A stretch of 64,000 bases of DNA from Macrostomum lignano. Its lineage: Eukaryota. A program made the translations under genes and the position numbers. Under the pieces are notes generated by a model. It did no database searches, had not been told where the DNA came from, and saw only the letters and a program-made list of their open reading frames with translations. Where the stretch lies: the NCBI GenBank assembly GCA_002269645.1, contig NIVC01001427.1, positions 124,001 to 188,000 of the forward strand, in the 5' to 3' direction. Every line of letters starts with the position of its first letter. Positions within the stretch are counted from its first letter, which is position 1. Below, piece by piece: positions 1 through 64,000 of this stretch.

Positions 1-84
1 ATCGTCACCACCGAGGCCGCCTACGTTAAGGACCTGGCCGTGCTGGTTGATGTGAGTGGTGGCCGCTGATCGGGGCAGACACTA

Positions 85-117
<33 letters not shown>

Positions 118-239
118 CAGACAGACAGACAGACAGACAGACACAGACAGACAGACAGACACAGACAGACAGACACAGACAGACAGACAGACAGACAGAC
201 CAGACAGACAGACACAGACAGACAGGCAGGCAGGCAGAC

Positions 240-286
<47 letters not shown>

Positions 287-309
287 GGCAGGCAGGCAGG
301 CAGACAGAC

Positions 310-343
<34 letters not shown>

Positions 344-466
344 CAGACAGACAGACACAGACAGACAGCAGACAGAACAGACAGACAGACACAGACAGAC
401 AGCAGACAGAACAGACAGACAGACAGACAGACACAGACAGACAGGCAGACAGACAGACAGGCAGGC

Positions 467-523
<57 letters not shown>

Positions 524-3500
524 GGCAGGCAGACCCAGACAGACAGACAGACACAGACAGACAGACAGACAGACAGACAGTCGGACTCACTGACACCCGT
601 CCCCATCCGCATCCCAGGGCTACATATCGCCCATGAAGCAGGAGCGGCAGCTGTTCTCAGAGGACACGGTGAACACGGTGTTCAGCAATCTCGAGAGCCT
701 GTGCGAATTTCATCGCGGGCTCCTGCGCCGCCTTGAGCGGCACCAGCGCAGCCTGCGCGACTTTTCCCAGGTGTTCGTGGACAGCCTGGCCGGCTTCCAG
801 CAGTACGGCGTCTACTGCATAAACTTCCCCAGGTGAGGCTCGGAGAGGAAGCAGAGAGGAAGGAGAAGAGAGGGGGTAGAAGAGGAATGGAGGGAGTGAG
901 AGGAAGGGGATGAGAAAGGGAGAGGATGAGGGAGAAGAGGGAGAGGGAGGGGATGAGAGAGGAGAGAGGGGAAGAGGGATGAGAGGGAGGGGATGAGGGA
1001 GAGGAGGGAGGGGATGAGGGAGAGGAGGGAGGGGATGAGGGAGAGGAGGGAGGGGATGAGGGAGAGGAGGAAGGGGATGAGGGAGAGGAGGAAGGGGATG
1101 AGGGAGAGGAGGGAGGGGATGAGGAAGAGGAGGGAGGGGATGAGGGAGAGGAGGGAGGGGATGAGGGAGAGGAGGGAGGGGATGAGGGAGAGGAGGGAGG
1201 GGATGAGGGAGAGGAGGGAGGGGATGAGGGAGAGGAGGGAGGGGATGAGGGAGAGGAGGGAGGGGATGAGGGAGAGGAGGGAGGGGATGAGGGAGAGGAG
1301 GGAGGGGATGAGGGAGAGGAGGGAGGGGATGAGGGAGAGGAGGGAGGGGATGAGGGAGAGGAGGGAGGGGATGAGGGAGAGGAGGGAGGAGATGAGGGAG
1401 AGAAGGCAGAATGAAGAATGTGAAGCGGGAAACTGCAGTCCATGCGGACTCATTGACGATACCGCATCACTAAGTCTATCGCATCCCCCCTGCAGCTCCC
1501 TGGCCCACCTAGAGGAGGTTCAATCTCAGTCCGAGGCCAGGGCCTACCTGTCTGCCCGCCAGCAAGCCCTGGAGCTGTGCCTGCCTCTGCAGACCTACCT
1601 GCTGAAGCCAGTGCAGCGGATACTCAAATACCACCTGCTGCTCATGGTGAGTCCTTGGATGCTTGCTTGCCGCTGCGCCAGTTCTCTTTGCTGTTTGCCA
1701 GCCCCTGGTAAACACGGGGCCGCGTGCCACTGGTTAAACTTTCCTTCGATGAACAACTGGCGATGTTTTCTAAACCAATTTGCCTTCAAATCTGCCCGCT
1801 CCGCCCCTTGTGGAAATCCGCCGCACTGAATAGAATCCGCCCCTGTTCCGCCCCCTAACGGCTTGTATAAATCCGCCCCTGTTCTGCCCCTAACGGCCTG
1901 TATAAATCCGCCCCTGTTCTGCCCCTAAACGGCTTGTATAAATCCGCCCCTGTTCTGCCCCTAACGGCCTGTATAAATCCGCCCCTGTTCTGCCCCTAAC
2001 AGCCTGTATAAATCCGCCCCTGTTCTGCCCCTAAACGGCTTGTATAAATCCGCCCCTGTTCTGCCCCTAACGGCCTGTATAAATCCGCCCCTGTTCTGCC
2101 CCTAAACGGCCTGTATAAATCCGCCCCTGTTCTGCCCCTAAACGGCTTGTATAAATCCGCCCCTGTTCTGCCCCTAAACGGCTTGTATAAATCCGCCCCT
2201 TTTCTACCCCTAACGGCCTGTATAAATCCGCCCCTGTTCTGCCCCTAACGGCCTGTATAAATCCGCCCCTGTTCCGCCCCTAACGGCTTGTATGAATCCG
2301 CCCCTGTTCCGCCCCTACCGGCTTGTATAAATCCGCCCCTGTTCCACCCCTAACGGCTTGTATGAATCCGCCCCTGTTCCGCCCCTACCGGCTTGTATAA
2401 ATTCGCCCCTGATCCGCCCCCTAACGGCTTGTATAAATCCGCCCCTGTTCCGCCCCCTAACGGCTTGTATAAATCCGCTCCTATTTCGGTCTTAGAAAGT
2501 TCTTAGAAATCCGCTACAATCCGCCCCTAAAGCTATCCATAAATCCGCTCCTGTTCCGCCCCTGCTTCTTCTAGGTTTGCTAAATCCACCCTGAATCTCA
2601 CCTTAGTAATATATGGATTTGCCTTCATAGCAATTCTATATTTTCAGCTATCCGCCCCTCCTCCGCCCCAGAGCCTGCAGAAATCCGCCCCCAGCGGCGA
2701 CGCCGATCGGCACATCAAGGCCGCCCTGGACGGCATGACCGGCATCGCCTCGGACATCAACGAGGTGCAGCGCCGGCACGAGCACGCGCTCCGGGTGGAG
2801 GAGCTCAAGTCGCTGCTGAAGTCCGCCCACCTGGACATCGGCAGCCTGGGTGAGCTGGTGCGCGAGGACAGCTTTCGCATCCACGGGCACAAGGGCGCCC
2901 GCCAGGTGTTCCTCTTCCACAAGGCCATCCTGCTCACCAAGCGGCTGCAGAACGGCTGCCTGGCCATCAAGGAGATCATCCGCTGCGCCAACCTCATGCT
3001 TATCGAGTCCATTCCCAAGGAGCAGCTCAGCTTCCACATTCTGCCATTCGACAATCCCAAATGCCAGCTCACCCTGCAGGCCCGCCGCATCGACCAGAAG
3101 GCGCAGTGGTGCCGCGACATCAAGCGGCTCATTATTGAGAACTACGAGGCCACAATACCGGAGAAGGCCAAGCACATTGTGCTCAACATGAGCGAGCTGT
3201 TGAACCAGAACTGCAACGGAGCCGCCGCCGCAGCCGCGCCTGCCACGGTCGCCGAGTCGCAGTCGCCTCCGCCATCTGGCCGGCGCCGCAATCATTCGTC
3301 CGGCAGGCGGGAGCTGCACATCTCCTCGCCTGAGCGGCCCGCTGCCGGACTGCGCCGGAACAACTCGGACGAGCAGCTGGAGGTGGCCGGCCCCTTGCAG
3401 CGGTCGCGCCCCGTCTCCCGCTGCTACTCCAGCACTGAGGACCTCGGCGACCTGCTCCGCTATCATGAGGAGGCGCTCAAGGAGATCTTCACCAGGACTA

Positions 3501-6096
3501 CCAGGTTTGCTATTCGAATGAATTTCGAGTTCGGGAGTTGTCCTTATATACACTGAGAATCGCCCCGAAGTCACACTGAGAACCGCCCCGAAGTCACACT
3601 GAGAATCGCCCCGAAGTCACACTGAGAACCGCCCCGAAGTCACACTGAGAATCGCCCCGAAGTCACACTGAGAATCGCCCCGAAGTCACACTGAGAACTG
3701 CCCCGAAGTCACACTGAGAATCGCCCCGAAGTCACACTGAGAACCGCCCCGAAGTCACACTGAGAATCGCCCCGAAGTCACACTGAGAATCGCCCCGAAG
3801 TCACACTGAGAACCGCCCCCAAATCACCCTGAGAATCGCCCCGAAGTCACCCTGAGAATCGCCCCGAAGTCACACTGAGAATCGCCCCGAAGTCACACTG
3901 AGAATCGCCCCGAAGTCATACTGAGAATCGCCCCCAAATCACCCTGAGAATCGCCCCGAAGTCATACTGTGAATCGCCACCCAAATCACCATGAGAATCA
4001 CCCGAAGTCACACTGAGAATCGCCCCCAAATTACCCTGAGAATCGCCCCGAAGTCAACACTGAGAATCGCCCCCAAATCACCCTAAGAATCGCCCCCAAA
4101 TCACCCTGAGAATCGCCCCGAAGTCACACTGAGAATCGCCACCCAAATCACCCTGAGAATCGCCCCAAAATCACCCTGTGGATGTCACCAAAATAATTGA
4201 CTGCGGTCCACAAACCTGTGCTCCCGCAGGTGCGGCTCCTCGTCGGACAGCTCCGCCGAGATGGACGGTGAAGCCGCCGCCGCCGCTGCCCCCGCCGGCT
4301 CGCCTGGCGGTTTCCTGTCCGGTCCAGACGCCGACTTCACCTCCATCGCCATCGAGATCAACGAAGAGGTTCTTGGCGCTTCCGGCACCTCAGCTGCCGT
4401 TGTCTACGGCACCTCGCCGCGGACTGCAGGCAGCGGCGGCGGTGGCGGTGGAGGCCACCGCAGGCAGCCGAGCGCCGGCCGCGGCAGCGACATCCTGCGC
4501 GCCGCCATCGACAAGTCGGCCGCTGTGTCGGCGGCTGCAGTGGCGGCAGCGGCGGCGGCATCGGCGGGCCCCTCTAGCGGAAACGGCAGCGGCAACGGCT
4601 GTTCAAAGGGCTCAGAGTCCTCGCCGCTGTACATTCACTGCCCCAAGGGCAACTACGACAACGTCGTGTTCGGCCGAGCCTACGATAAGTACATCGAGAA
4701 GACTAAAAAGAAAATTGCCCTAACTGAAACCGACATCGACGAGATTCTGCGGCCTCTGAGGCAGCTGCGCGTCGACACTGTGTCGGGCAACGGCGACCAG
4801 GCCGCTGGCGGCGGCGGCGGCGGCTCCCCGGGCAACACGCCGCCATCCTCCGCCGACTCCTCGCCGAGGCGCATCGTCAGCCGCATCGCCACCTCGTTTG
4901 GAGTCGGACCGGCAGCGGCCACGCCGACTCGAATCATCCAGGTGTCGGAGCAGCAGCAACAGCAGCAGCAACAGCAGCCCTCCAAGCAGCAGCGCAGCCA
5001 GTCGGTTGTCAGCGCCGTCCTCGGCGAGATCAAATCCGCCTGGCGCAAAAACTCTTCGGCCAGTTCGAGCAGCGCTGCTCCGGCAGCCGCCGCCGTTGCC
5101 GCGGTCCCGGCGGCGTCGCATTTGCACCTGAAGCGGAACGACTCGGCCTCATCAGATAGTGGCGTGTTCCTTCCGGCCCAGAAGCAGCAACAGCAGCGGC
5201 AGCAGCAACAGCAGCGGCAGCAGCAACAGCAGCGGCAGCAGCAACAGCAGCAGCAGCAGCAGCGGCGGCAACAGCAGCAGCCGACTCGGCGGGCCCGCGC
5301 ACCCGCACCCCCGGCTCCGAAAAGCAGCAACGGCAACGGAGGGGGCGGCGGCGAAGGCGGAGGCGACGGCAGCAGCGTGCAGAAGTTCATCCGCTCATTC
5401 GCCAACAAGGACGCCAGGGCCAGGCAGGAGAGCGACATCCTGAATGGCGCCATCGCGCCCAGCCGCCGTCTGCCGTCCGGCACTCGGCCGCCAGCCGCTG
5501 AGCCGCCGCCGCCGCCGCCGCAGTCGACATCGTCGAAATCCGCAGCCCGACAGCCGCACAGAAACGGCGAACAGCGGGGGTCGCAGCCGCAGGCGGCCGC
5601 CCCCACCAGCGCCCCGGTGTCCAGGCGCAGCGCCACGAAGTCCCGCAAGGCTCCGTCGCCGCCACCGCCGCAGCAGCAGCCGCAGTCCCCGTTGACCGCC
5701 GCTCACGTTCTGGACTCGCTGCCGTACGCGGATGATGAGGACTCCAACAAGTCCCAACATCATCAGCATCATCATCAGCAGCAGCAGCAGCAGTGGCGCC
5801 GCACCCAGGACTGGTCGCAGGAGAACCTCTACTGGAAGCAGGCCCTGCTTGACCCGCCGGCGAAGCCTCCCCGGCCCCCGGCCAGCGGCAGCAGCGGGCG
5901 GCCGCCTCCGCCTCCGCCACCATCGCAGCCGCCGTCGGCGCCGCTCGCCGTCAGCGAAGCCTCCGGGACGTCCTGTGCCGCCGCCGCGGCCGCCGCTGCT
6001 GCCGGCTCGTCAGAAGGCGGCGGGGATGTCGACGAGGAGGACCGGCCGCGCAGGGGCACCGTGGCCAACCTGGTGAACCGCTTCCAGCACAACTGA
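1..6096 (+). CDS. DH-PH Rho guanine nucleotide exchange factor, PLEKHG1/2/3-like (5'-partial)
   Basis: Exons <1-51, 618-832, 1496-1646, 2672-3504 (in-frame alternative acceptors start the exon at 2648 or 2681) and 4230-6096; all GT-AG and phase compatible. DH motifs [12 protein letters not shown] and [19 protein letters not shown]; PH region [10 protein letters not shown]...[12 protein letters not shown]...[15 protein letters not shown]...[13 protein letters not shown] matches my recollection of PLEKHG1-3. Long Q/A/G/P-rich tail. Confidence 0.9.
85..580 (+). repeat. (GACA)n microsatellite in RhoGEF intron
   Basis: Direct reading; occasional GGCA and CACA variants. Confidence 0.97.
845..1410 (+). 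repeat. Purine-only 21-bp minisatellite (GGGAGAGGAGGGAGGGGATGA) in RhoGEF intron
   Basis: Tandem units, most regular at about 986-1395. Confidence 0.95.
1832..2480 (+). repeat. 35-36-bp minisatellite (AATCCGCCCCTGTTCTGCCCCTAACGGCCTGTATA) in RhoGEF intron
   Basis: AATCCG recurs at 1870 and 1905 and onward. Confidence 0.95.
3551..4178 (+). repeat. 23-bp minisatellite (ACTGAGAATCGCCCCGAAGTCAC) in RhoGEF intron
   Basis: CTGAG recurs at 3553 and 3576 and onward; the array degenerates toward its 3' end. Confidence 0.95.
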
Positions 6097-6198
6097 GTGC
6101 GCCCTGCGACCGCGCCTTTACCACCGGCTTTCCTGCGTAATCCGTTATTCAGTTGCAGCCCTGACTGAAGCTAAATGAAAAATATCAACTGACCAGAC

Positions 6199-7540
6199 CC
6201 TCAGAATCGCCCTTAATCCCCACCCTCAGAATCGCCCTTAATCCCCACCCTCAGAATCGCCCCCTTTAATCCCCAACCAGAGAATCGCCCCCTTAATCCC
6301 CAACCAGAGAATCGCCCCTTAATCCCCAACCAGAGAATCGCCCCCTTAATCCCCCCACCCAGAGAATCGCCCCCTTAATCCCCACCCAGAGAATCGGCCC
6401 CCTTAATCCCCACCCAGAGAATCGCCCCCTTAATCTCCACCCAGAGAATCGGCACCCTTAATCCCCACCAGCGAGAATCGACCCCCTTAATCCCCACCCA
6501 AAAAATCGCCCTCCTTAATCCCCAACCAGAGAATCGCCCCATTAATCCCCCCACCCAGAGAATCGGCCCCCTTAATCCCCACCCAAAGAATCGCCCCCTT
6601 AATCCCCACCCAAAGAATCGCCCCCTTAATCCCCACCCAAAGAATCGGCCCCCTTAATCCCCAACCAGAGAATCGCCCCCCCTTAATCTCCTCCCAGAGA
6701 ATCGCCCCCTTAATCCCCAACCAGAGAATCGCCCCTTAATCCCCAACCAGAGAATCGCCCCCTTAATCCCCCCACCCAGAGAATCGCCCCCTTAATCCCC
6801 ACCCAGAGAATCGGCCCCTTAATCCCCACCCAGAGAATCGCCCCCTTAATCCCCACCCAGAGAATCGGCACCCTTAATCCCCACCGAGAGAATCGACCCC
6901 CTTAATCCCCACCCAAAAAAATCGCCCTCCTTAATCCCCAACCAGAGAATCGCCCCATTAATCCCCCCACCCAGAGAATCGGCCCCCTTAATCCCCAACC
7001 AGAGAATCGCCCCCCCTTAATCTCCTCCCAGAGAATCGCCCCATTAATCCCCCCACCCAGAGAATCGCCCCCCTTGATCCCCACCCAGAGAATCGCCCCC
7101 TTGATCCCCACCCAGATTATCGCCCCCCTTAATCCCCACCCAGAGAATCGGCACCCTTAATCCCCACCGAGAGAATCGACCCCCTTAATCCCCACCCAAA
7201 AAATCGCCCTCCTTAATCCCCAACCAGAGAATCGCCCCATTAATCCCCCACCCAGAGAATCGGCCCCCTTAATCCCCACCCAAAGAATCGCCCCCTTAAT
7301 CCCCACCCAAAGAATCGCCCCCTTAATCCCCACCCAAAGAATCGGCCCCCTTAATCCCCAACCAGAGAATCGCCCCCCCTTAATCTCCTCCCAGAGAATC
7401 GCCCCATTAATCCCCCCACCCAGAGAATCGCCCCCCTTGATCCCCACCCAGAGAATCGCCCCCTTGATCCCCACCCAGATTATCGCCCCCCTTAATCCCC
7501 AACCCGAGAATCGCCCCCCCCTTAATCCCCACCCCAAAAA
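6199..7540 (+). repeat. About 27-bp C-rich minisatellite (CAGAGAATCGCCCCCTTAATCCCCACC) downstream of RhoGEF stop
   Basis: Variable-length tandem units; blocks of variant units recur as higher-order repeats. Confidence 0.95.
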
Positions 7541-7707
7541 CCCCTTCAGTTTTAGTGAAGTCGCATGTATCGCACAGCACAAGTGAATGCATTAAGCGTC
7601 TGCTCTGCTTATTTCGCAATAACTCTCAGATATTTTTATTCCCAAATTTTGAGTTTTTTCCTCATTCAACCCTGCTTTCCCTCCGATCTCTTATCAGAAA
7701 GTAATTT

Positions 7708-7720
7708 AATAAATAAATAA
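7708..7720 (+). terminator. Candidate RhoGEF polyadenylation signal (AATAAATAAATAAA)
   Basis: First AATAAA cluster downstream of the stop on the + strand. Confidence 0.45.
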
Positions 7721-8577
7721 AACAGCTTGCATTGCTACTCGCCCTGTTGCTACTACTAGTCAGTAGTCTGCTGGGGTGGCCTTGTTTTACTCTGGCGCAA
7801 TGTCATGCCGAGCTCTCATCTTGTCTTTTTTTTCACACCGAAACTGCACGTTTATCTCTTTTTTATTTTTTAAAGTCTGCTTTTCCTGCTTTTGCTAAGT
7901 TTTGTTAATATCAGCTGATCCAAGTCAGTTTTTTTCTATAATTCAAACTGTTCTTTTGTCACCCTGATGCAATGCTGATGCATTTAACTTGTGCACTGGT
8001 TTGTGTTGATTGCCTCACTGATTCGCAATCGGCATCCCCGCAGTTCCCCTTTTGCTGTTGTCCCCGAGTTTTGCTTCCAGACCCAGCTTGCTTCATCTTA
8101 ATCTGTTGTTGTCTGACGTTTCCTGGAACTGAAATAGGCTAACTTTTTCTATGAAACAGTGTAAATTTGTTATAACTATGCTTATGAATTCTTATTAGGA
8201 ATTTATTGCTACATGCTCACCGGGCTGACAGGTGAAAAAAGATATTTTTAGCTCCCAGTTGCTGCCCCGTTGCCCCCCAGCTCTGAGTTGCTAGTAGTTC
8301 AATATTCTATAATTACTGATATGATTGCCTGCACTGTGCATGAGTTGTGTAACTAATGCCATTAGACTGGGGACCTGTGCGGCATCATCTACTATTCTAG
8401 TCTGTGGCTTATTCTTATTATAATTATATATTATTAACGTTATATTAATTCTCCCGCTCCGCATTCGTTAAATGTTTTGCTGTCTTCTCGCCTCTGTTGC
8501 TGTCAGTCAGGAATCTGACTGGTCTGAGCTTGCCCGCTTACTAGGGGGGGGGGGATAGTAGGGTGAGTAGGGTAATT

Positions 8578-9846: not shown

Positions 9847-10489
9847 TCGATCCGTCTCAGAGAACCAGTTTTGGGATATCAGAGACTTCAAGAGACCGGG
9901 GCACATATCCATATATTTCAATATCCAGAAAATTCAGAACCGGCCTCGCCACAAATGCAAAAAGAACGAAAGCAAATTTTTAATTGAGCCATTGGCAAAC
10001 TCACTCGTTAACTAACTTTGTTTATTCATATCGCACGCATACCTGAAGGGGGTGGACTGAGCATTAGGATTTTGACACCTCGTGCATACAAAAAATAGAC
10101 TAATTTGGTGAGCTTGTTGGAAAGTTGTTTGACTCTGTTGAGTCTAAATCCACAACTCTTACGTGCTGCTTCTTGTGATTTGGTTAAAAGTTGTTTAATA
10201 AACCAGAAGTGAAAACGCACATTTTTTGATTAAATATTTCGCCAAAAATATCGATATTGAAGCCTATGGGCTGCACGATTTATGAGTTGGAAAGCGTTTG
10301 AAAAAATATAGTCAAATTTATTATTATGAAATAGCATATAAACGATACACTGATTTGGCTAAGCATAAAGTCTGAGAAGTTTTCTGCGACTGCGATCATT
10401 TAGGTCCTAAGGCTGCTGTGACATGTCCATGCCTGACCCAATCTGACCCTAAAACTTAAAAGCGAAATCGACCTTGACCCAAATGTGAA

Positions 10490-11075
10490 TCATGCTTGAC
10501 CCAACTGTGAATCACACTTGACCCAAATCTAGTCTAGGCTTGACCCAAATGTGAACCATGCTTGACCCAAATCCAGTCTAGGCTTGACCCAATGTGAATC
10601 ATGCTTGACCCAAATCTAAGCCATGCCTGACCCAAATCTGCATGAATCTAGTCCAGGCTTGACCCAAATCTGAATCATGCTTGACCCAAATCAAGTCTAA
10701 GCTTGACCCAAATCTAGTCCAGGCTTGACCCAAATCTGAATCATGCTTGACCCAAATAAATCTAAGCTTGACCCAAATCTAGTCTAGGCTTGACCCAAAT
10801 CTAGTCTAGGCTTGACCCAAATCTAGTCTAGGCTTGACCCAAATCTAGTCTAGGCTTGACCCAAATCTAGTCTAGGCTTGACCCAAATCTAGTCTAGGCT
10901 TGACCCAAATCTAGTCTAGGCTTGACCCAAATCTAGTCTAGGCTTGACCCAAATCTAGTCTAGGCTTGACCCAAATCTAGTCTAGGCTTGACCCAAATCT
11001 AGTCCAGGCTTGACCCAAATCTGAATCATGCTTGACCCAAATAAATCTAAGCTTGACCCAAATCTAGTCTAGGCT
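10490..11075 (+). repeat. 22-bp minisatellite (GCTTGACCCAAATCTAGTCTAG) downstream of TAL-like stop
   Basis: Tandem units, most homogeneous at about 10780-11010. Confidence 0.93.
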
Positions 11076-11114
11076 TGGCATTCGCAGTTGGTTGCTCAGG
11101 AAGCCAGGCCCAGC

Positions 11115-12146
11115 TCAGTAGTCCGGGGTTCGCCACACCAGAATGGCGAACCGGTTCACGAAGAAGTGGAACATGCAGCCGATCTCGTGCGTGCAGTAGG
11201 AGCCGTACTGGAATCGGCCGACGATGACGTGCCAGGCCCGCTGGTCGAGGCTGTCCAGCTCCGACTTGATGTACTTGGCAATGTCCTTCTCCACGGAGAA
11301 CTCGTCCTGGGCCTTCCTGGCCAGCCGGACGATCAGCCGCTGCAGGTCCTCGGGCATCTCCTTGTCCAGCGCGATGATCCGCACACCGTCCATGTCGTCC
11401 CGGTCGTCGTCAGCGCCAGCCGCGCCCGCTTGGACTCGCTGCTCCGTGACTTTTTCGCTGCAAGTTGGGTGGCATTGTACTCGTGTTGAATTCGACTTTA
11501 AGCATTTTCAGCCTACCAGAAAGGCCAACATGGTTAAAAGTACTGATAGCTCTGTTGCTCACATGTAATCTTCGTTGGGCTTCAGGCCGAGCACCTCGCA
11601 GTATTCCTCGATAGAAATGGTGCCTGAGTTGTCAATGTCGAACAGGTTCAGCCATTTCTGCGGACGGGTTGGCGGCTTTGTGTACTAAACTGGGGATCAC
11701 GTGACAGCTAGGTCAGAAACAGGAGATCCGAATAGCATGGATTCGAGGAAGCTGCAAAGGGTTGCTTAAATTGCTTGCTTCTCTAATCAGTGGATCCCCA
11801 GATAGCCAATGGATTGCTAATCTAGCTAGTGGATTGCTAATCTAGCTAGGGGATTGCTAATCTAGCCAGTGGATTTCTAATCTATCCAATGGATTACTAA
11901 TCTATCCAATCTATTGCTAATCTAGCTAGTGGATTGCTAATCTAGCCAATGGATTGCCGAATCAGAGGCCAAAATTGCGACGTTGCTAAGGCACACTCGG
12001 CTCTTAGCAACGGGCCACTCCGGCGTCACCTGCACGAAGTTCATGTCCAGCCCATTCTCCCGGCAGTAGTCCAGCAGCTCGTCCTTCGTGATGGCACCGC
12101 TGTGGTCCGTGTCGATGCACTCGAAGGCGCTGAGTAGGTCGCACAT
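11115..12146 (-). CDS. TAL-like protein; isoform using alternative first exon 1b
   Basis: Exon 12030-12146 (MCDLLSAFECIDTDHSGAITKDELLDYCRENGLDMNFVQ): 117 nt, phase-0 GT donor, joins the same downstream exons. Confidence 0.82.
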
Positions 12147-13188
12147 GACTCTGATTTGGTGCCACCAGAAGGGGCGGCCGCCCTTGGCTAAGTGACAGGT
12201 TTAGCCTAGCTAAATGCAGTCCGTGTTTACTGCTGGCCTGCACTGGACTTGGCCCGGCTCTGCACGCCTCGTGAGCCACTCACTCGCTCTGCAGCCAAAG
12301 CTGCATGAAGGCCCCGCAAGACAAGAAGAAATGGCAAATGTTCCGGTTGGGGTGGCTGCCCGCTTTCAACACACACCTATCCTCCAGCACATCTGCCCAC
12401 TCAATGGACCCCCATAGGGAGAGAGGAGTACGTCTGGGAAGACCAGCAAGGGGTCACGTGAGGTTAATGTACATTAGTAGGAGGCGCGAGCGTACACTGC
12501 GGGGAGATGCTACTTTTTCTCCCCAGCGTTCCCGTTCCCATACAGCCATGACATGCCAGACAATAGCATTTCTGTTCGGCTGTAATTTTGCCAAGGAGCG
12601 TCTTTTTCGGGCATTTGATACTGAAGGCCGAGTTAAAGGTATTAAAAGGTAGAAATCGGACACAAGTGACAGAAAGATGGGAGTCCAAGAAAGTGTCTGT
12701 TGGGAGTGACAGAAAGTGTCAGATGGGAGTGACAGAAAGTGTCAGATGGGAGTGACAGAAAGTGTCTGTTGGGAGTGACAGAAAGTGTCAGATGGGAGTG
12801 ACAGAAAGATGGGAGTCCAAGAAAGTGTCTGTTGGGAGTGACAGAAAGTGTCAGATGGGAGTGACAGAAAGTGTCAGATGGGAGTGACAGAAAGTGTCTG
12901 TTGGGAGTGACAGAAAGTGTCAGATGGGAGTGACAGAGAGTGTCAGATGGGAGGGACAGAAAGTCAAACGGAGTGACAGAAAGAGCCAGATGGGAGTGAC
13001 AGAAAGTGTCAGTTAGGAGTGACAGACAGTGCCAACAAAATGCTAGCTACAGAAATGTCAGTCTCGCACACCTGAGTGAACTTTTCGTCAAAGTTCTGCC
13101 GCTTGCAGTAGGCCTCGAGCTCCTCGCGGGTGATCTCGCCGCTAAAGTCGGTGTCGATGGACTCGAATGCTTTGAGAAAGTCGGCCAT
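11115..13188 (-). CDS. Tegumental-allergen-like (TAL) protein, 2 EF-hands + dynein light chain domain; isoform using first exon 1a
   Basis: Exons 13072-13188 (MADFLKAFESIDTDFSGEITREELEAYCKRQNFDEKFTQ), 11563-11657 (KWLNLFDIDNSGTISIEEYCEVLGLKPNEDY) and 11115-11457 (linker + DLC: EKDIAKYIKSELD...WHVIVGRFQYGSYCTHE...FFVNRFAILVWRTP). GT-AG junctions, phases 0 and 2, 184 aa. Confidence 0.85.
11800..11955 (+). repeat. 20-bp minisatellite (GCTAGTGGATTGCTAATCTA) in TAL intron
   Basis: About 7 degenerate units. Confidence 0.85.
12665..13020 (+). repeat. 23-bp minisatellite (GGGAGTGACAGAAAGTGTCAGAT) between the two TAL first exons
   Basis: Tandem units seen directly. Confidence 0.9.
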
Positions 13189-13803
13189 GGCTGAGAGTCA
13201 GGGGGGGCGAGCTGGTCTTGCTGAGGTCTTGCAAAAAGGCGAAGAGCAACGCAGCTTTGAGAGACTGGAAACGTGGAATTATAGAGAGAGAATTGGAGCC
13301 TCAAGGCGGGGCGTGGGCAGAGACTGACCCCCCCCCCTGACTGAGCGAGCGGCACAATGGGAGTTGCAAATTGCAAGAGTGAAGCTCGGCAGTTTGGACA
13401 ATCGCCAGCAGCACAGGTCTCTGCGTGTCTGAGCAAACAGGAGTCGCTGCCGAGTTGCCACTTGGCCGAGAGAGAGCAAACTCAGTGAGTGAGCAGTGAG
13501 TGAGTGAGATGGGGCCGGCGACTGCAAGGCAGACCACAGTGGTATGAAGTTGCAACAGCTCTGCTGCACCTGGCCACAATTTGAATGGAAAATACCATGC
13601 CATAAAAGACGAGAGAAGTTTTTAGAAAGACAGAGAAGAGCCCGCGTGCTTGTTTGAAAAACAAAAAGCAATTCGGGTGAGGGGGGCTTTTGACTGGGTT
13701 TCTTAAATTTTGTCTTTTTTGAGAATTTTGCTGAGCCACACAGGGCGCGCCGAGACAGCGCGGCGACCACAGGTGGGTGGGGAGGGAGATGGGAGAAGCA
13801 GAA

Positions 13804-14795
13804 TCTGCTGGTCAGTAGGCACACTGCAAATGTAAAGTAAAACACCAATACTACTGCTGGTGAGTAGGCACACTGCAAATGTATAGTAAAACACCAATAC
13901 TACTGCTGGTGAGTAGGCACACTGCAAATATATAGTAAAACACCAATACTACTGCTGGTCAGTAGGCACACTGCAAATGCATAGTAAAACACCAATACTA
14001 CTGCTGGTCAGTAGGCACACTGCAAATGTATAGTAAAACACCAATACTACTGCTGGTCAGTAGGCACACTGCAAATGCATAGTAAAACACCAATACTACT
14101 GCTGGTCAGTAGGCACACTGCAAATGTATAGTAAAACACCAATACCACTGCTGGTCAGTAGGCACACTGCAAATGTATAGTAAAACACCAATACTACTGC
14201 TGGTCAGTAGGCACACTGCAAATGCATAGTAAAACACCAATACTACTGCTGGTCAGTAGGCACACTGCAAATGTAAAGTAAAACACCAATACTACTGCTG
14301 GTGAGTAGGCACACTGCAAATGTATAGTAAAACACCAATACTACTGCTGGTCAGTAGGCACACTGCAAATGTAAAGTAAACACCAATACTACTGCTGGTC
14401 AGTAGGCACACTGCAAATGTATAGTAAAACACCAATACTACTGCTGGTCAGTAGGCACACTGCAAATGTATAGTAAAACACCAATACTACTGCTGGTCAG
14501 TAGGCACACTGCAAATGTATAGTAAAACACCAATACTACTGCTGGTCAGTAGGCACACTGCAAATGTATAGTAAACACCAATACTACTGCTGGTCAGTAG
14601 GCACACTGCAAATGTATAGTAAACACCAATACTACTGCTGGTCAGTAGGCACACTGCAAATGTATAGTAAACACCAATACTACTGCTGGTCAGTAGGCAC
14701 ACTGCAAATGTATAGTAAACACCAATACTACTGCTGGTCAGTAGGCACACTGCAAATGTATAGTAAACACCAATACTACTGCTGGTCAGTAGGCG
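13804..14795 (+). repeat. 48/49-bp minisatellite (TACTGCTGGTCAGTAGGCACACTGCAAATGTATAGTAAAACACCAATAC)
   Basis: About 20 units; the last ones are 48 bp (one A fewer), which produces spurious repetitive ORFs. Confidence 0.95.
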
Positions 14796-15012: not shown

Positions 15013-15735
15013 CTAGCGGGTGGCGACCTCGGCCTGGTGCACAGTCAGGAGGAACCGGAAGTCATCGCCGGGCGGTGGCCGGTGCGCCAGCAGCCCCGTC
15101 AGCAACACCAGGAACTCCTCCTGCGGCTCGGCGCTAAGCAACTGCGCCGGCTCAACCTCCGGCGGCGGCGGCGGCGGTGGCGCCACCTCGACCGCGGGCT
15201 CCGGCGACGGCGGCGCCTCGTCTTCAGTGGACGGCTCCTCCTCCTCGGAGGTGGCCTTGCCGCAGGAGCTCTTGGCAGCTGCCCGCTTCTTCCTCGGCGC
15301 TGTGGGCGCGGACACCGACGGCGGCTCGGTCTCCGGATCGGCGTGCTCAAACTCCAGCGCTGCCGCAGAGACGTCCGCAGTCGGTGAAGTCAGCGGCGTG
15401 ACGGTCTCGACCTCCTGCGGCGCCGGTGGGGCCTGCCGGTCGGCGATGGTCAGGAGGAAGCGGAAGTCGCCCGCATTGTCGGCGTCGGCCTCGGGGACGG
15501 CGCGGCCGGACTGGCGCGCTTCGAACTCGGCGTTGTGCCGGCTGGTCGGGAAGCTGGCGGCTGAGCTGTTGGCCAGGCTGTCCGCGGCGTCAGTCGTGTC
15601 GTCCTCGTCGTCCTCGGAGCCGCGCTGGCAGGCAATGGGCCGTCGCCGGTCGCAGCCGCCGCCACCACCGCCGCTGCTGCCGCCGCCGCCGCCGCTGCCG
15701 CGGGTGCATCGGAAGCTCTTTGAGAAAACCGGCAT
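15013..15735 (-). CDS. Orphan single-exon 240-aa acidic, Pro-rich disordered protein with repeated DFRFLLT motif
   Basis: GC-rich open frame resembling neighbouring exons; GTTTAG acceptor 13 nt before the ATG; motif (G)D(D)FRFLLT(I/V) twice plus EEFLVLLT. No family recognised. Confidence 0.65.
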   Translation of the reverse strand: MPVFSKSFRCTRGSGGGGGSSGGGGGGCDRRRPIACQRGSEDDEDDTTDAADSLANSSAASFPTSRHNAEFEARQSGRAVPEADADNAGDFRFLLTIADRQAPPAPQEVETVTPLTSPTADVSAAALEFEHADPETEPPSVSAPTAPRKKRAAAKSSCGKATSEEEEPSTEDEAPPSPEPAVEVAPPPPPPPEVEPAQLLSAEPQEEFLVLLTGLLAHRPPPGDDFRFLLTVHQAEVATR

Positions 15736-18745: not shown

Positions 18746-19409
18746 TACAGTATGTATATTTTTGCCAGCAGAGCACTGTTGGCAATGCATAAAAGTATGT
18801 CAATAAATTCGATATAGCTCATGTTTTTTATACTTACTACTGACAATTAACAGAGTGATCAGTAGTATCATGAGGAAAAAAGCATTAATAATAAAGATTT
18901 GCTGATTTAGAATAAAAGCAGCAGCTGACTGGGCCGGGGCCGCCGCACGGAATTTCCCGCCGAAAAAAGCACTGTAAAGCGTAGACTGAACCGGAGGCAT
19001 TGGGCAGAGTTCCCAACGGCTCAACGATAGAAGACAAGCATCAATGATGAAGGTAAAAAAAGATGCAGATAAAAAATGAAACCAGACGCAATCCGGATCA
19101 CAAAATCAATACTATCGAGGTGATTCAGGCGCTGGTGCATAAAATATGGGTGCGTCGCTCTAACTGCCCTACTGTGAGTAGGCAAATTTGCTTTCTTATA
19201 AGCAACAATAAAAATTGAGTGCTAAAATTCGAATAAAAAATAGAAATGTATGAGATGGAACAGAGCTGAGTCCGTTTAAATAATGCGTGCTAGCAGGTAG
19301 ATTTGTATGAGGGAAGCTGAACCGTGATGCCAAACACTTCCAGAATGAATTTTATAGTCTTTATCAATTGATTGATGATGAATCTGTCGAGCATATGACC
19401 AATCTGTGG

Positions 19410-20400
19410 AGTCTATGACCAATTTGAAGAGTCTATGATCAACTTGAAGAGTCTATGACCAATTTGAAGAGTCTATGACCAATTTGAAGAGTCTATGACC
19501 AATTTGTAGAGTCTATGACCAATTTGAAGCGTCTATGACGAATTTGAAGAGTCTATGGCCAATTTGAAGAGTCTATGACCAATTTGAAGAGTTTATGACC
19601 AATTTGTTGAGTCTATGATCAAATTTTAGAGTGTATGACCTATTCGTAGAGTCTATGACCTATTCGTAGAGTCTATGACCTATTCGTAGAGTCTATGACC
19701 TATTCGTAGAGTCTATGACCTATTCGTAGATTCTATGACTTATTCGTAGAGTCTATGACCTATTCGTAGAGTCTATGACCTATTCGTAGAGTCTATGACC
19801 TATTCGTAGAGTCTATGACCTATTCGTAGAGTCTATGACCTATTCGTAGAGTCTATGACCTATTCGTAGAGTCTATGACCTATTCGTAGAGTCTATGACC
19901 TATTCGTAGATTCTATGACTTATTCGTAGAGTCTATGACCTATTCGTAGAGTCTATGACCTATTCGTAGAGTCTATGACCTATTCGTAGAGTCTATGACC
20001 TATTCGTAGAGTCTATGACCTATTCGTAGAGTCTATGACCTATTCGTAGAGTCTATGACCTATTCGTAGAGTCTATGACCTATTCGTAGAGTCTATGACC
20101 TATTCGTAGAGTCTATGACCTATTCGTAGAGTCTATGACCTATTCGTAGAGTCTATGACCTATTCGTAGAGTCTATGACCTATTCGTAGAGTCTATGACC
20201 TATTCGTAGAGTCTATGACCTATTCGTAGAGTCTATGACCTATTCGTAGAGTCTATGACCTATTCGTAGAGTCTATGACCTATTCGTAGAGTCTATGACC
20301 TATTCGTAGAGTCTATGACCTATTCGTAGAGTCTATGACCTATTCGTAGAGTCTATGATCTATTCGTAGAGTCTATGACCTATTCGTAGAGTCTATGACT
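19410..20400 (+). repeat. 20-bp minisatellite (GAGTCTATGACCTATTCGTA) abutting the PAK stop codon
   Basis: Near-perfect units at 19630-20400; a diverged variant (GAGTCTATGACCAATTTGAA) at 19410-19630. Confidence 0.97.
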
Positions 20401-47037: not shown

Positions 47038-48081
47038 GCGAGCCGTGTCTGCGGTCCATTGACTATGAAGACGATTGGTGAATTTCAATTGTTTTTTCGA
47101 GTTCTTTTTTTGTTCCTTTAAGCTTCCTGTTTAGCCAGTCTATTATTCTTTCAAATAAAATATTGAATATTAGAAAGTTGAGTCAAAAATGGTTGGCCAT
47201 AAGCGCATATGTTTCTTTGACGCGTTTGAGCTACAAGTGTGGTAAATGTGTGTTTTCAATTTATTGGCTGTCAAGACGGATGAACTAATCCATTGCATAT
47301 AATATTCCTTCATCTAGGATGGTGGAAAATATTGCACAATTAATAATCATGTGACATAAAATAGATCATTTTGTGTTTAGTATCTGAGGCGTTGCTATGG
47401 TTGGCATTTTTGAATTCAATCCTAAAACAGCAGCAGTCTTTATTTTCATGAAAACTGTTGATGGGGCAGCGAGAGCTCGGCTTTGCTGGAAATTTGTTTT
47501 TGCCTGTTTTTCGTGTCCGCAAGCCCAACGAATCCTGCATCGATTTTTCATCAATCCACCCAAACACGAAGGTCGCTCTTGCTACTTAAAGTAGCAAACA
47601 CTGCAAGGCCAATCGAAAAGTAAAAGAACAAATGCAGCACAAGGCAAGAGAGGCCAGTTTTCGGTCTCTGATGAACTGCAGGGATGAAAAAGAAACTTTC
47701 TGTGAAAAAGCAACAGTTACAAAAAATATCGGCATCTTAAGAGTTGCAGCAAATGAAGGCTGACTTTTTACCACTGCCAGCCCAGTCTCACCTGTACTGC
47801 TCTGATGGATCTGCTCGGATAATCAAAAATCTATTCCCGACTTCCTTTCCTGGAATCTGGGTGTCATGGATACGAATCAATAAAAAACTGTAGACAAACA
47901 ACCCCTGCTCTGCTATCTAAACGGTTAGGGTTACATTAAAATTCATACTCTGCCAAAACTTTTTTCTAATAAAAAATGGATTGCATTTCATATGAAAGAT
48001 TTCATCACAGGCAGTGCCCGCCACGGGAAGGCTCTCAAGTTTCCCCTGGAGCGGCAACGGGAATGAGTTTCTATTTATTTT

Positions 48082-48878
48082 GAGAACTGCACAATATCAC
48101 TAGAAATCTCTTTGAAAACTACACAATCTCACTAGAAATCTCTATGAGAACTGCACAATCTCACTAGAAATCTCTTTGAAAACTACACAGTCTCACTAGA
48201 GATCTCTATGAGAACTACACAATCTCACTAGAAATCTCTATGAGAACTGCACAATCTCACTAGAAATCTTAATGAGAACTGCACAATCTCACTAGAAATC
48301 TCAATGAGAACTACACAATCTCACTAGAGATCTCTATGAGAACTACACAATCTCACTGGAAATCTCTATGAGAACTGCACAATCTCAGTAGAAATCTCTA
48401 TGAGAGCTACACAATCTCACTAGAAATCTCTATGAGAGCTACACAATCTCACTATAAATCTCTATGAGAACTGCACAATCTCACTAGAAATCTCTATGAG
48501 AATTACACAATCTCACTAGAAATCTTTCTGAGAGCTACAAAATCTCACTAGAAATCTCTATGAGAACTGCACAATCTCACTAGAAATCTCTATGAGAGCT
48601 ACACAATCTCACTATAAATCTCTATGAGAACTGCACAATCTCACTAGAAATCTCTATGAGAATTACACAATCTCACTAGAAATCTTTCTGAGAGCTACAA
48701 AATCTCACTAGAAATCTCTATGAGAACTGCACAATCTCACTAGAAATCTCTATGAGAATTACACAATCTCACTAGAAATCTTTTTGAGAGCTACAAAATC
48801 TCACTAGAAATCTCTATGAGAACTACACAATCTCACTAGAAATCTCTATGAGAACCACACAATCTCACTAGAAATCTC
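48082..48878 (+). repeat. 32-bp minisatellite (CTAGAAATCTCTATGAGAACTACACAATCTCA)
   Basis: About 25 tandem units. Confidence 0.95.
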
Positions 48879-49125
48879 TGGTCGCAAATCCGAGTGCGCG
48901 AGAGATTCCAGCTTACAACCCAGCGCTACGCCTGGTTGGATCTTAGGCTATTCAGCCATTTCAGCCACCCCCTCCAGCAAGTCGCAGTCAGAGTGGCCCA
49001 GAGATTTGCGTCGCTCTTTATAAACACAGGAGCTTGCAAGAGGACTGTCGTGAATGCCCTGCTGGAGCCCCGTTGCAATAAGTCAGACATTTAAATTTCA
49101 ACAAGTCAGATCGAGGAACTCCAGA

Positions 49126-63060: not shown

Positions 63061-63254
63061 GCTTTGACATCTCAGAAACCCCCCCCCCGTAATCTCAGTT
63101 ATTCTCTGAGAGCCTTTGCGTCTCAGTTTTTCTCCCCAGCACAGCATTATAGTTGCATTTAATTTTTACATGAACCCTTCATGTCTGACATGACGTTTCT
63201 TTTATTCTACCGTGACGCTTCTTAATTTTTTAAATGACACTTTCATTAGTTTTA

Positions 63255-64000
63255 AATGAGGCTTCTATGATTTTTTCTTGACGCTTCTATGATTTTTACA
63301 TGACGCTTCTATGATTTTTATATGACGTTTCTATGATTGTTTACATGACGCTTCTATGATTGTTTACATGACGCTTCTATGATTGTTTACATGACGCTTC
63401 TATGATTTTTTACATGACGCTTCTATGATTTTTTACATGACGCTTCTATGATTGTTTACATGACGCTTCTACGATTTTTTACATGACGCTTCTATGATTG
63501 TTTACATGACGCTTCTATGATTGTTTACATGACGCTTCTATGATTTTTTACATGACGCTTCTACGATTTTTTACATGACGCTTCTACGATTGTTTACATG
63601 ACGCTTCTATGATTTTTACATGACGCTTCTATGATTGTTTACATGACGCTTCTATGATTTTTTACATGACGCTTCTATGATTTTTTACATGACGCTTCTA
63701 TGATTTTTACATGAAGCTTCTACGATTGTTTACATGACGCTTCTACGATTGTTTACATGACGCTTCTATGATTGTTTACATGACGCTTCTATGATTTTTA
63801 CATGACGCTTCTATGATTGTTACATGACGCTTCTATGATTTTTTACATGACGCTTCTACGATTGTTTACATGACGCTTCTATGATTTTTAATGACGCTTC
63901 TACGATTTCTTACATGACGCTTCTACGATTTTTTACATGACGCTTCTATGATTTTTTACATGACGCTTCTATGATTGTTTACATGACGCTTCTACGATTT
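63255..64000 (+). repeat. 22-23-bp minisatellite (TACATGACGCTTCTATGATT[T/G]TT), continues past the window end
   Basis: Direct reading. Confidence 0.97.

Follow-up and report, generated by a model that had tools for sequence, protein, structure and literature searches.

In the free-living flatworm Macrostomum lignano, the gene BOX15_Mlig009106g1 has two copies of its first coding exon. The gene lies on the minus strand of a stretch of 64,000 nucleotides (positions 124,001 to 188,000 of contig NIVC01001427.1, assembly GCA_002269645.1), referred to below as the window; all coordinates are window positions, and positions 11115-13188 span the coding parts of the gene. On balance, and with modest confidence, we favour the reading that the second copy, exon 1b, serves as an alternative 5' coding exon in place of the first, exon 1a, so that the gene would specify two 184-aa proteins which differ in EF-hand 1. 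The product built with exon 1a (isoform A) matches PAA68045.1 with 100% identity, and joining either 1a or 1b (the latter giving isoform B) to exons 2 and 3 yields an open, in-frame coding sequence of 184 aa. Exons 2 and 3 each appear once in the 64-kb window. An earlier note on this DNA had described two exons of 117 nt, each with its own ATG, its own EF loop and a phase-0 GT donor, and every coordinate proved correct on the minus strand (Table 1).

The two exons align without a gap, with 75 of 117 nt (64%) and 21 of 39 aa (54%) identical. When the peptide of either exon was searched against the window by tblastn, only the partner exon was recovered (E ~1e-8), and a repeat finder independently called the pair as an 88-nt direct repeat, 72% identical and 1042 bp apart. 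As judged by these comparisons, the similarity of 1a and 1b is far above chance. The repeated unit reaches 4 nt 5' of both ATGs (AGCC versus AGTC). The AG reported 2 nt before the ATG of 1a and 4 nt before that of 1b is present, and 1b has another AG at 2 nt; since the repeat unit includes these 4 nt, and a nearby AG is common by chance, the AG ahead of each ATG does not count as independent evidence.

Exon 1b differs from 1a at 42 of 117 nt, yet it has acquired neither a stop codon nor an indel, and the ATG, the GT donor, the phase and the exact length are kept. The Ca2+ ligands D1, D3, S5, T9 and E12 are identical in both loops, G6 and I8 are also kept, and direct comparison of the two peptides shows the hydrophobic EF-hand core to be preserved (L/F4, A7, F8, I11, I19, L24, Y27, C28 and F37, with F4L a conservative exchange). 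The 18 substitutions between isoforms A and B all fall in EF-hand 1 and lie mostly away from ligand and core positions. The earlier observation that 1b adds two Cys and that 1a is more basic was borne out, with 3 Cys in 1b and 1 in 1a and net charges of -7 and -5, respectively. Isoform B also has a more acidic exiting helix, and the peptide CDLLSAFECIDTDHSGAITK is an example of sequence unique to 1b. Loop position 4 is Phe (DTDF...) in 1a and in all M. lignano 1a-type paralogues, and 1b has DTDH...; Pfam scores both as EF-hands. The PROSITE EF-hand pattern, which we take to disallow Phe at loop position 4, would fit 1b and not 1a.

We asked whether 1b has been maintained as coding sequence. 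Its GC content by codon position is 0.56/0.32/0.92, that of exons 2 and 3 together is 0.60/0.32/0.87, and the flanking introns have 0.44-0.54 GC. Neutral evolution was simulated by placing 42 random substitutions (or 21, half the divergence for each branch) on exon 1a, with intron-like composition. The open reading frame (ORF), ATG, GT and loop were together retained in 2.6e-4 of the runs with 42 substitutions and in 0.019 of those with 21, and a GC content at third codon positions (GC3) of at least 0.92 was reached in <= 1e-4 of runs. The Pfam model EF-hand_7 scored isoform B at 48.8 bits as against 42.6 bits for isoform A. On these features, 1b is likely to be translated now, or to have been so until very recently, and given such coding signatures, its alternative use with 1a is the most economical reading. 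The synonymous divergence of ~0.8, taken at face value, implies an old duplication. Dating by the proportion of synonymous differences (pS) is ambiguous, as the values of 0.50 for 1a-1b and 0.55-0.62 for pairs of 1a with paralogues rest on ~22 sites and are confounded by GC3 bias. When the loci of five paralogues and one locus from Opisthorchis were searched at relaxed thresholds, neither a second exon 1 nor a relic of one was found, and on this comparison the duplication is specific to this gene. The notion that 1b is an ancient variant nearer to distant family members was rejected, the mean identity to these being 15.8/39 for 1b and 16.7/39 for 1a.

The distance between 1b and exon 1 is about the same for all paralogues, whose own first exons are much closer to one another; the protein sequence encoded by 1b has therefore evolved fast. 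The number of non-synonymous substitutions per site (dN) is 0.43 for 1a-1b as compared to 0.08-0.23 for 1a-paralogue pairs, i.e. 2-5 times faster. Such rapid change would also be expected if 1b were an unused or former relic of a partial tandem duplication, or if it occurred only in frame-shifted, non-productive transcripts, leaving isoform A as the sole protein. We consider this unlikely, and the facts that speak for it are largely those that weigh against alternative use of 1b. The GenBank models of all three genome copies of the gene (see below) start with exon 1a only. A collection of 5.8 billion proteins contained no 1b-containing product, and only 1a-type products for the gene and its copies. 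The GenBank annotation was built on genome-guided RNA-seq assemblies (PMC5730564), and isoform A thus has transcript support. However, the assembler was set to an isoform fraction of 0.75, by which minor isoforms were dropped (PMC5730564), and the lack of isoform B in the annotation is therefore weak counter-evidence.

Further points on the same side come from the sequence around and within 1b. The ratio of dN to its synonymous counterpart (dS) between 1a and 1b is 0.51 (dS 0.84), which over 39 codons is not significantly below 1. No TATA-like element is present within 400 nt upstream of 1b, its acceptor has a mediocre pyrimidine tract and matches the published motif for spliced-leader (SL) acceptors poorly (AATCAG versus [T/C]TNCAG), and the other paralogues manage without such an exon. 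The SL itself ends in ATG, and trans-splicing at either acceptor would by our reading open an out-of-frame upstream ORF. Exon 1b is retained, and identical, in all three genome copies; intron 1b is also free of differences among them, and because the introns match as fully as the exons, a three-copy test of selection has no power. What argues against a relic is that, at a dS of ~0.8, the ORF, ATG, GT, length, Ca2+ ligands, hydrophobic core and GC3 of 0.92 have all been kept, an outcome which the neutral simulations gave at frequencies of <= 0.02 for the first feature set and <= 1e-4 for GC3. An exon acting as a poison exon would have no need of an intact EF-hand.

In metagenome contigs, a scan for exon 1/exon 2 junctions with either first exon gave 0 matches, and the sole match to 1b-like proteins was a generic EF-hand locus (L011), 31% identical. 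A word-indexed protein search with the EF-hand domain of isoform B gave no candidates, but it also missed P0008, which has 35 identical residues, so this negative carries no information. The identifiers Mlig009106 and Mlig001654 were not found in the paper texts and M. lignano supplements that were searched.

The duplicated exon carries its own ATG, and the choice between 1a and 1b therefore needs either alternative 5' ends, from a promoter or by SL trans-splicing, or a non-coding exon farther upstream that both share. In M. lignano, some 30-39% of genes are trans-spliced to a 35-nt leader. The SL acceptor motif of this species is [T/C]TNCAG, the acceptor norm is CAG and the donor consensus is GT[G/A]AG (PMC8629364). 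The AG before 1a fits the SL-acceptor motif at 5/6 positions and the CAG before 1b at 4/6. The 400 nt 5' of the 1a ATG (13189-13588, minus strand) contain zero ATG as compared to ~6 expected in random sequence, and CTCA/CACT repeats are abundant there; the last 160 nt before the 1b ATG are likewise without ATG. The donors of the paralogue first exons (GTAAAT, GTAAGA, GTGAGT and GTGAGT) are stronger than GTGTGC of 1a and GTGACG of 1b. Weak donors of this kind would fit competing, alternatively used exons, with two sites only to go by.

Under the reading that we favour, the first coding exon (39 codons, comprising the entire EF-hand 1) underwent tandem duplication 1042 bp downstream, and both copies have stayed coding. 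A transcript in which 1a is spliced to exon 2 would give the annotated isoform A. A transcript starting just 5' of 1b would join 1b to exon 2 and give isoform B, the transcription, splicing and translation of 1b all being predicted steps. Such a transcript might begin at a start site inside intron 1a, or it might receive its 5' end by SL trans-splicing at the CAG that lies 4 nt ahead of the ATG. Isoform B would then be the isoform A protein with another EF-hand 1 and identical Ca2+-ligand positions, and any difference in function is putative. The further proposal that both isoforms are made, that they are chosen by alternative SL trans-splicing or an internal promoter, and that they differ functionally, e.g. 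in target binding or in redox behaviour through the two extra Cys of 1b, we regard as speculative and rather improbable.

Choice by splicing alone would be expected if 1a and 1b were classical internal mutually exclusive exons, both spliced from a shared, unseen non-coding upstream exon. The AG before both ATGs and the excellent pyrimidine tract at 1a would suit such an arrangement, as would the CAG found 2-11 nt before the ATG in three paralogue groups as well. However, the AGs are equally well explained as SL acceptors, the stretch from the TATA-like element to the ATG of 1a holds no GT[G/A]AG donor, and no selector sequences for RNA pairing were found, with 0 inverted repeats in 11400-13300. 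We give this arrangement only a small chance.

A product with three EF-hands had been held in the earlier note to be disfavoured by the reading frame. This stands for the acceptors 2 and 4 nt before the 1b ATG, since 1a joined to either of them is shifted in frame and runs into an early stop, so that inclusion of both exons through these proximal acceptors would be non-productive. What had been overlooked is a weak in-frame acceptor 36 nt before the 1b ATG (exon start 12182). If this acceptor were used, 1a and 1b would share one mRNA encoding 235 aa with three EF-hands, in the order 1a-GGRPFWWHQIRV-1b-EF-hand 2-dynein light chain (DLC). The frame 5' of the 1b ATG is indeed open for 54 nt, with exactly one in-frame AG, and 10 of the 12 third positions in the 36-nt extension are G or C by hand count. 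On the other side, the acceptor is AAG and not the usual CAG, it has a poor pyrimidine tract or almost none, and stronger out-of-frame CAG/AG acceptors 32-34 nt downstream would compete with it. EF-hands normally function in pairs, which also speaks against a three-hand protein; a third EF-hand at this place was seen in 0 of 47 aligned family members, and an internal exon would need no ATG aligned with that of 1a. Such a protein is, in our judgement, very improbable, and use of 1b in place of 1a continues to be the reading we prefer.

The protein was placed among its relatives. Both isoforms contain a Pfam EF-hand_7 pair, above the cut-off of 30 bits, and a Dynein_light domain (E 1.6e-24, residues 102-181), and LC8 structures were also matched. 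The best solved structure was that of CaBP4 (9voa; E 3e-19 over residues 5-183 of isoform B, full length), followed by 5x2e, 'Tegumental protein 20.8 kDa'. A cluster named 'Tegument antigen [Clonorchis sinensis]' (P0032, Opisthorchis/Clonorchis) matched with E 1.2e-19 over residues 2-182. A HMMER scan of 1.84 billion representatives returned ~1500 relatives, many of them of ~175-190 aa and aligned end to end; those with names included the 'Tegument antigen' known from Clonorchis sinensis and from Opisthorchis, as well as proteins from Paragonimus and from Cichlidogyrus, a monogenean. In the O. felineus gene (L009), exon 1 is 117 nt long, with a phase-0 end that falls on the same position of the alignment; exon 2 encodes EF-hand 2 and the remainder is one exon. 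Homology and exon structure identify this gene of a free-living flatworm, with its EF-hand pair and its DLC domain, as a true TAL/CaBP homologue.

In the literature, the family that combines EF-hands with DLC is restricted to parasitic flatworms (PMC4300400, PMC3317908). The M. lignano member argues that this range is too narrow rather than that the gene is unrelated. Its earlier designation as a TAL gene held as regards the EF-hand pair, the Dynein_light domain, the trematode homology and the exon structure, while the name 'tegument allergen' describes the relatives, the host being free-living. M. lignano has at least 6 paralogue groups with an EF-hand pair and DLC (the comparison took in loci L001-L010, of which L009 is that of O. 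felineus, and proteins P0002, P0003, P0006, P0011 and P0025), and in view of these TAL-like groups the statement that diversity arises by exon choice rather than by gene duplication was overstated.

A TAL-like EF-hand pair was also found fused to ribosomal protein eL6, instead of DLC, in several flatworm and environmental proteins. The EF-hand pairs of P0037, P0042, P0070, P0143, P0062/P0169 and P0038 are 46-55% identical to residues 1-76 of the gene product, and Pfam Ribosomal_L6e was detected in P0037, P0042, P0070 and P0143 with E 1e-27 to 2e-34. The link of Mesocestoides corti to eL6 comes from the database name of the cluster-mate P0169 only, and P0038, from M. lignano, has the EF-hand pair only. 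Several of the EF-hand/eL6 sequences lie on contigs of 1.1-2.7 kb, which are probably transcripts.

Two further copies of the gene, Mlig001654g1 and Mlig001654g3, are present on other contigs and are 99% identical. Three copies fit the hidden polyploidy that is known for the line from which the genome was sequenced. The copies L001, L002 and L003 (window positions 11115-14189 and two sister loci) are mosaic: in the 5' half the window copy equals L002, whereas in the 3' half L002 equals L003 and the window copy is unlike both, with strongly different 3' flanks. As read from these alignments, the mosaic suggests recombination or gene conversion between the copies. In L003, a single nucleotide is missing 9 nt ahead of the stop, which gives an altered C-terminus (PAA48706.1, 190 aa).

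Table 1. Features of the gene with duplicated first coding exon (window positions; pieces of sequence are given on the sense strand of the gene)
Feature	Position	Strand	Description
TATAAT, TATA-like	13278..13283	-	Candidate core promoter of the 1a transcript; 95 nt 5' of 1a ATG; motif match only, function putative
AG before 1a	13191..13192	-	2 nt 5' of 1a ATG; strong C/T tract (tcgccccccctgactctcAG|cc); candidate spliced-leader or cis acceptor
Exon 1a	13188-13072	-	117 nt, 39 codons; EF-hand 1; peptide MADFLKAFESIDTDFSGEITREELEAYCKRQNFDEKFTQ; annotated first coding exon, equals N-terminus of PAA68045.1
EF loop of exon 1a	~13155-13120	-	DTDFSGEITREE
1a donor GT	13070..13071	-	CAG|GTGTGC, phase 0; deviates from M. 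lignano consensus GT[G/A]AG
Minisatellite, intron 1a	12665..13031	-	23-nt unit, ~16 copies; sense-strand unit CTTTCTGTCACTCCCATCTGACA
In-frame AG acceptor	12183..12184	-	ccaAG|GGC; exon start 12182, 36 nt before 1b ATG; would add the 12-residue linker GGRPFWWHQIRV
Overlapping AG acceptors	12149..12152	-	cAGAG|tc; 4 and 2 nt before 1b ATG; both out of frame from 1a
Exon 1b	12146-12030	-	117 nt, 39 codons; diverged duplicate of 1a; EF-hand 1; peptide MCDLLSAFECIDTDHSGAITKDELLDYCRENGLDMNFVQ
EF loop of exon 1b	within 12030..12146	-	DTDHSGAITKDE
1b donor GT	12028..12029	-	CAG|GTGACG, phase 0; off consensus at +5
Minisatellite, intron 1b	11803..11957	-	20-nt unit
Exon 2	11657-11563	-	95 nt; EF-hand 2, loop DIDNSGTISIEE; acceptor ccgCAG|, consensus donor GTGAGC
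Exon 3	11457-11115	-	343 nt including TGA stop; linker and dynein light chain type 1 domain

Minisatellites with units of 20-50 nt are densely packed in the window, which also holds two arrays of 4-nt units; ~20 arrays score >400, examples being 85-580, 917-1406, 1834-2482, 3550-4178, 6203-7534, 10473-11077, 13805-14794, 19394-20399, 48081-48879 and 63213-64000. The odd GC/AT skews at 1-8000 are due to such arrays. A 600-bp array begins ~40 bp past the stop codon of the gene, and two more lie inside its introns. The pyrimidine-rich minisatellite of intron 1a was considered as an array of splicing-regulator sites and set aside, as comparable arrays are found all over the window; most probably it is repeat DNA of a generic kind. 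Upstream on the same strand, a single-exon ORF of 240 aa (15013-15735, minus strand) is annotated as a gene in GenBank; its product is Gly/Pro/Glu-rich and of low complexity, with no Pfam match recorded. From the end of this ORF to the 1a ATG is 1.8 kb, so the two genes might conceivably form an operon. Rfam gave no match in the window, and none of the opposite-strand ORFs across the 1b region was gene-like.

In flukes, TAL/CaBP proteins are under study as targets for drugs and vaccines and as allergens, and most descriptions call them parasite-specific. The locus described here puts the family, with the same exon plan, into a free-living model that is capable of transgenesis, where the EF-hand/DLC fusion could be dissected. 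If 1b is used, it would provide a natural swap of EF-hand 1 on an otherwise identical protein, and hence a clean tool for the contribution of EF-hand 1. If both isoforms should prove to exist and to be functionally distinct, the TAL/CaBP proteins would have their first described case of diversification at the level of exons, and both the family and its diversification would predate parasitism. Tandem exon duplication with alternative use is already well known, and the general significance is therefore limited.

Compared to SmTAL1 (Sm22.6), Clonorchis Tegu20.8 and CaBP1-4 of Fasciola/Opisthorchis, the M. lignano gene has a like exon plan, with a 117-nt exon 1. It differs from the fluke TAL/CaBP proteins in being only ~30-35% identical to them and in belonging to a free-living macrostomid without a neodermatan tegument, and none of the TAL/CaBP relatives examined shares its duplication of exon 1. 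Mutually exclusive use of exons duplicated in tandem occurs in tropomyosin, Dscam and many other genes. As in those tandem exons, the two exons here are adjacent and homologous, with equal length and phase, and their co-inclusion breaks the frame through the nearest acceptors, though not through the weak one at -36; unlike the classical cases, the duplication here concerns the first coding exon, which has its own ATG. In this respect the gene resembles alternative first exons, alternative promoters and SL trans-splicing as found in flatworms and nematodes, where each variant has its own start codon and a common downstream body. It departs from established cases of alternative SL use in that the 1b acceptor fits the published SL motif poorly and no promoter motif is found at 1b. 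The nearest functional parallel is alpha-actinin, in which mutually exclusive NM/SM exons exchange part of EF-hand 1 and alter Ca2+ sensitivity. Here too the exchanged segment is an EF-hand, but in contrast to alpha-actinin neither loop has lost any of its Ca2+ ligands, and therefore a Ca2+ on/off switch of the alpha-actinin type is not predicted.

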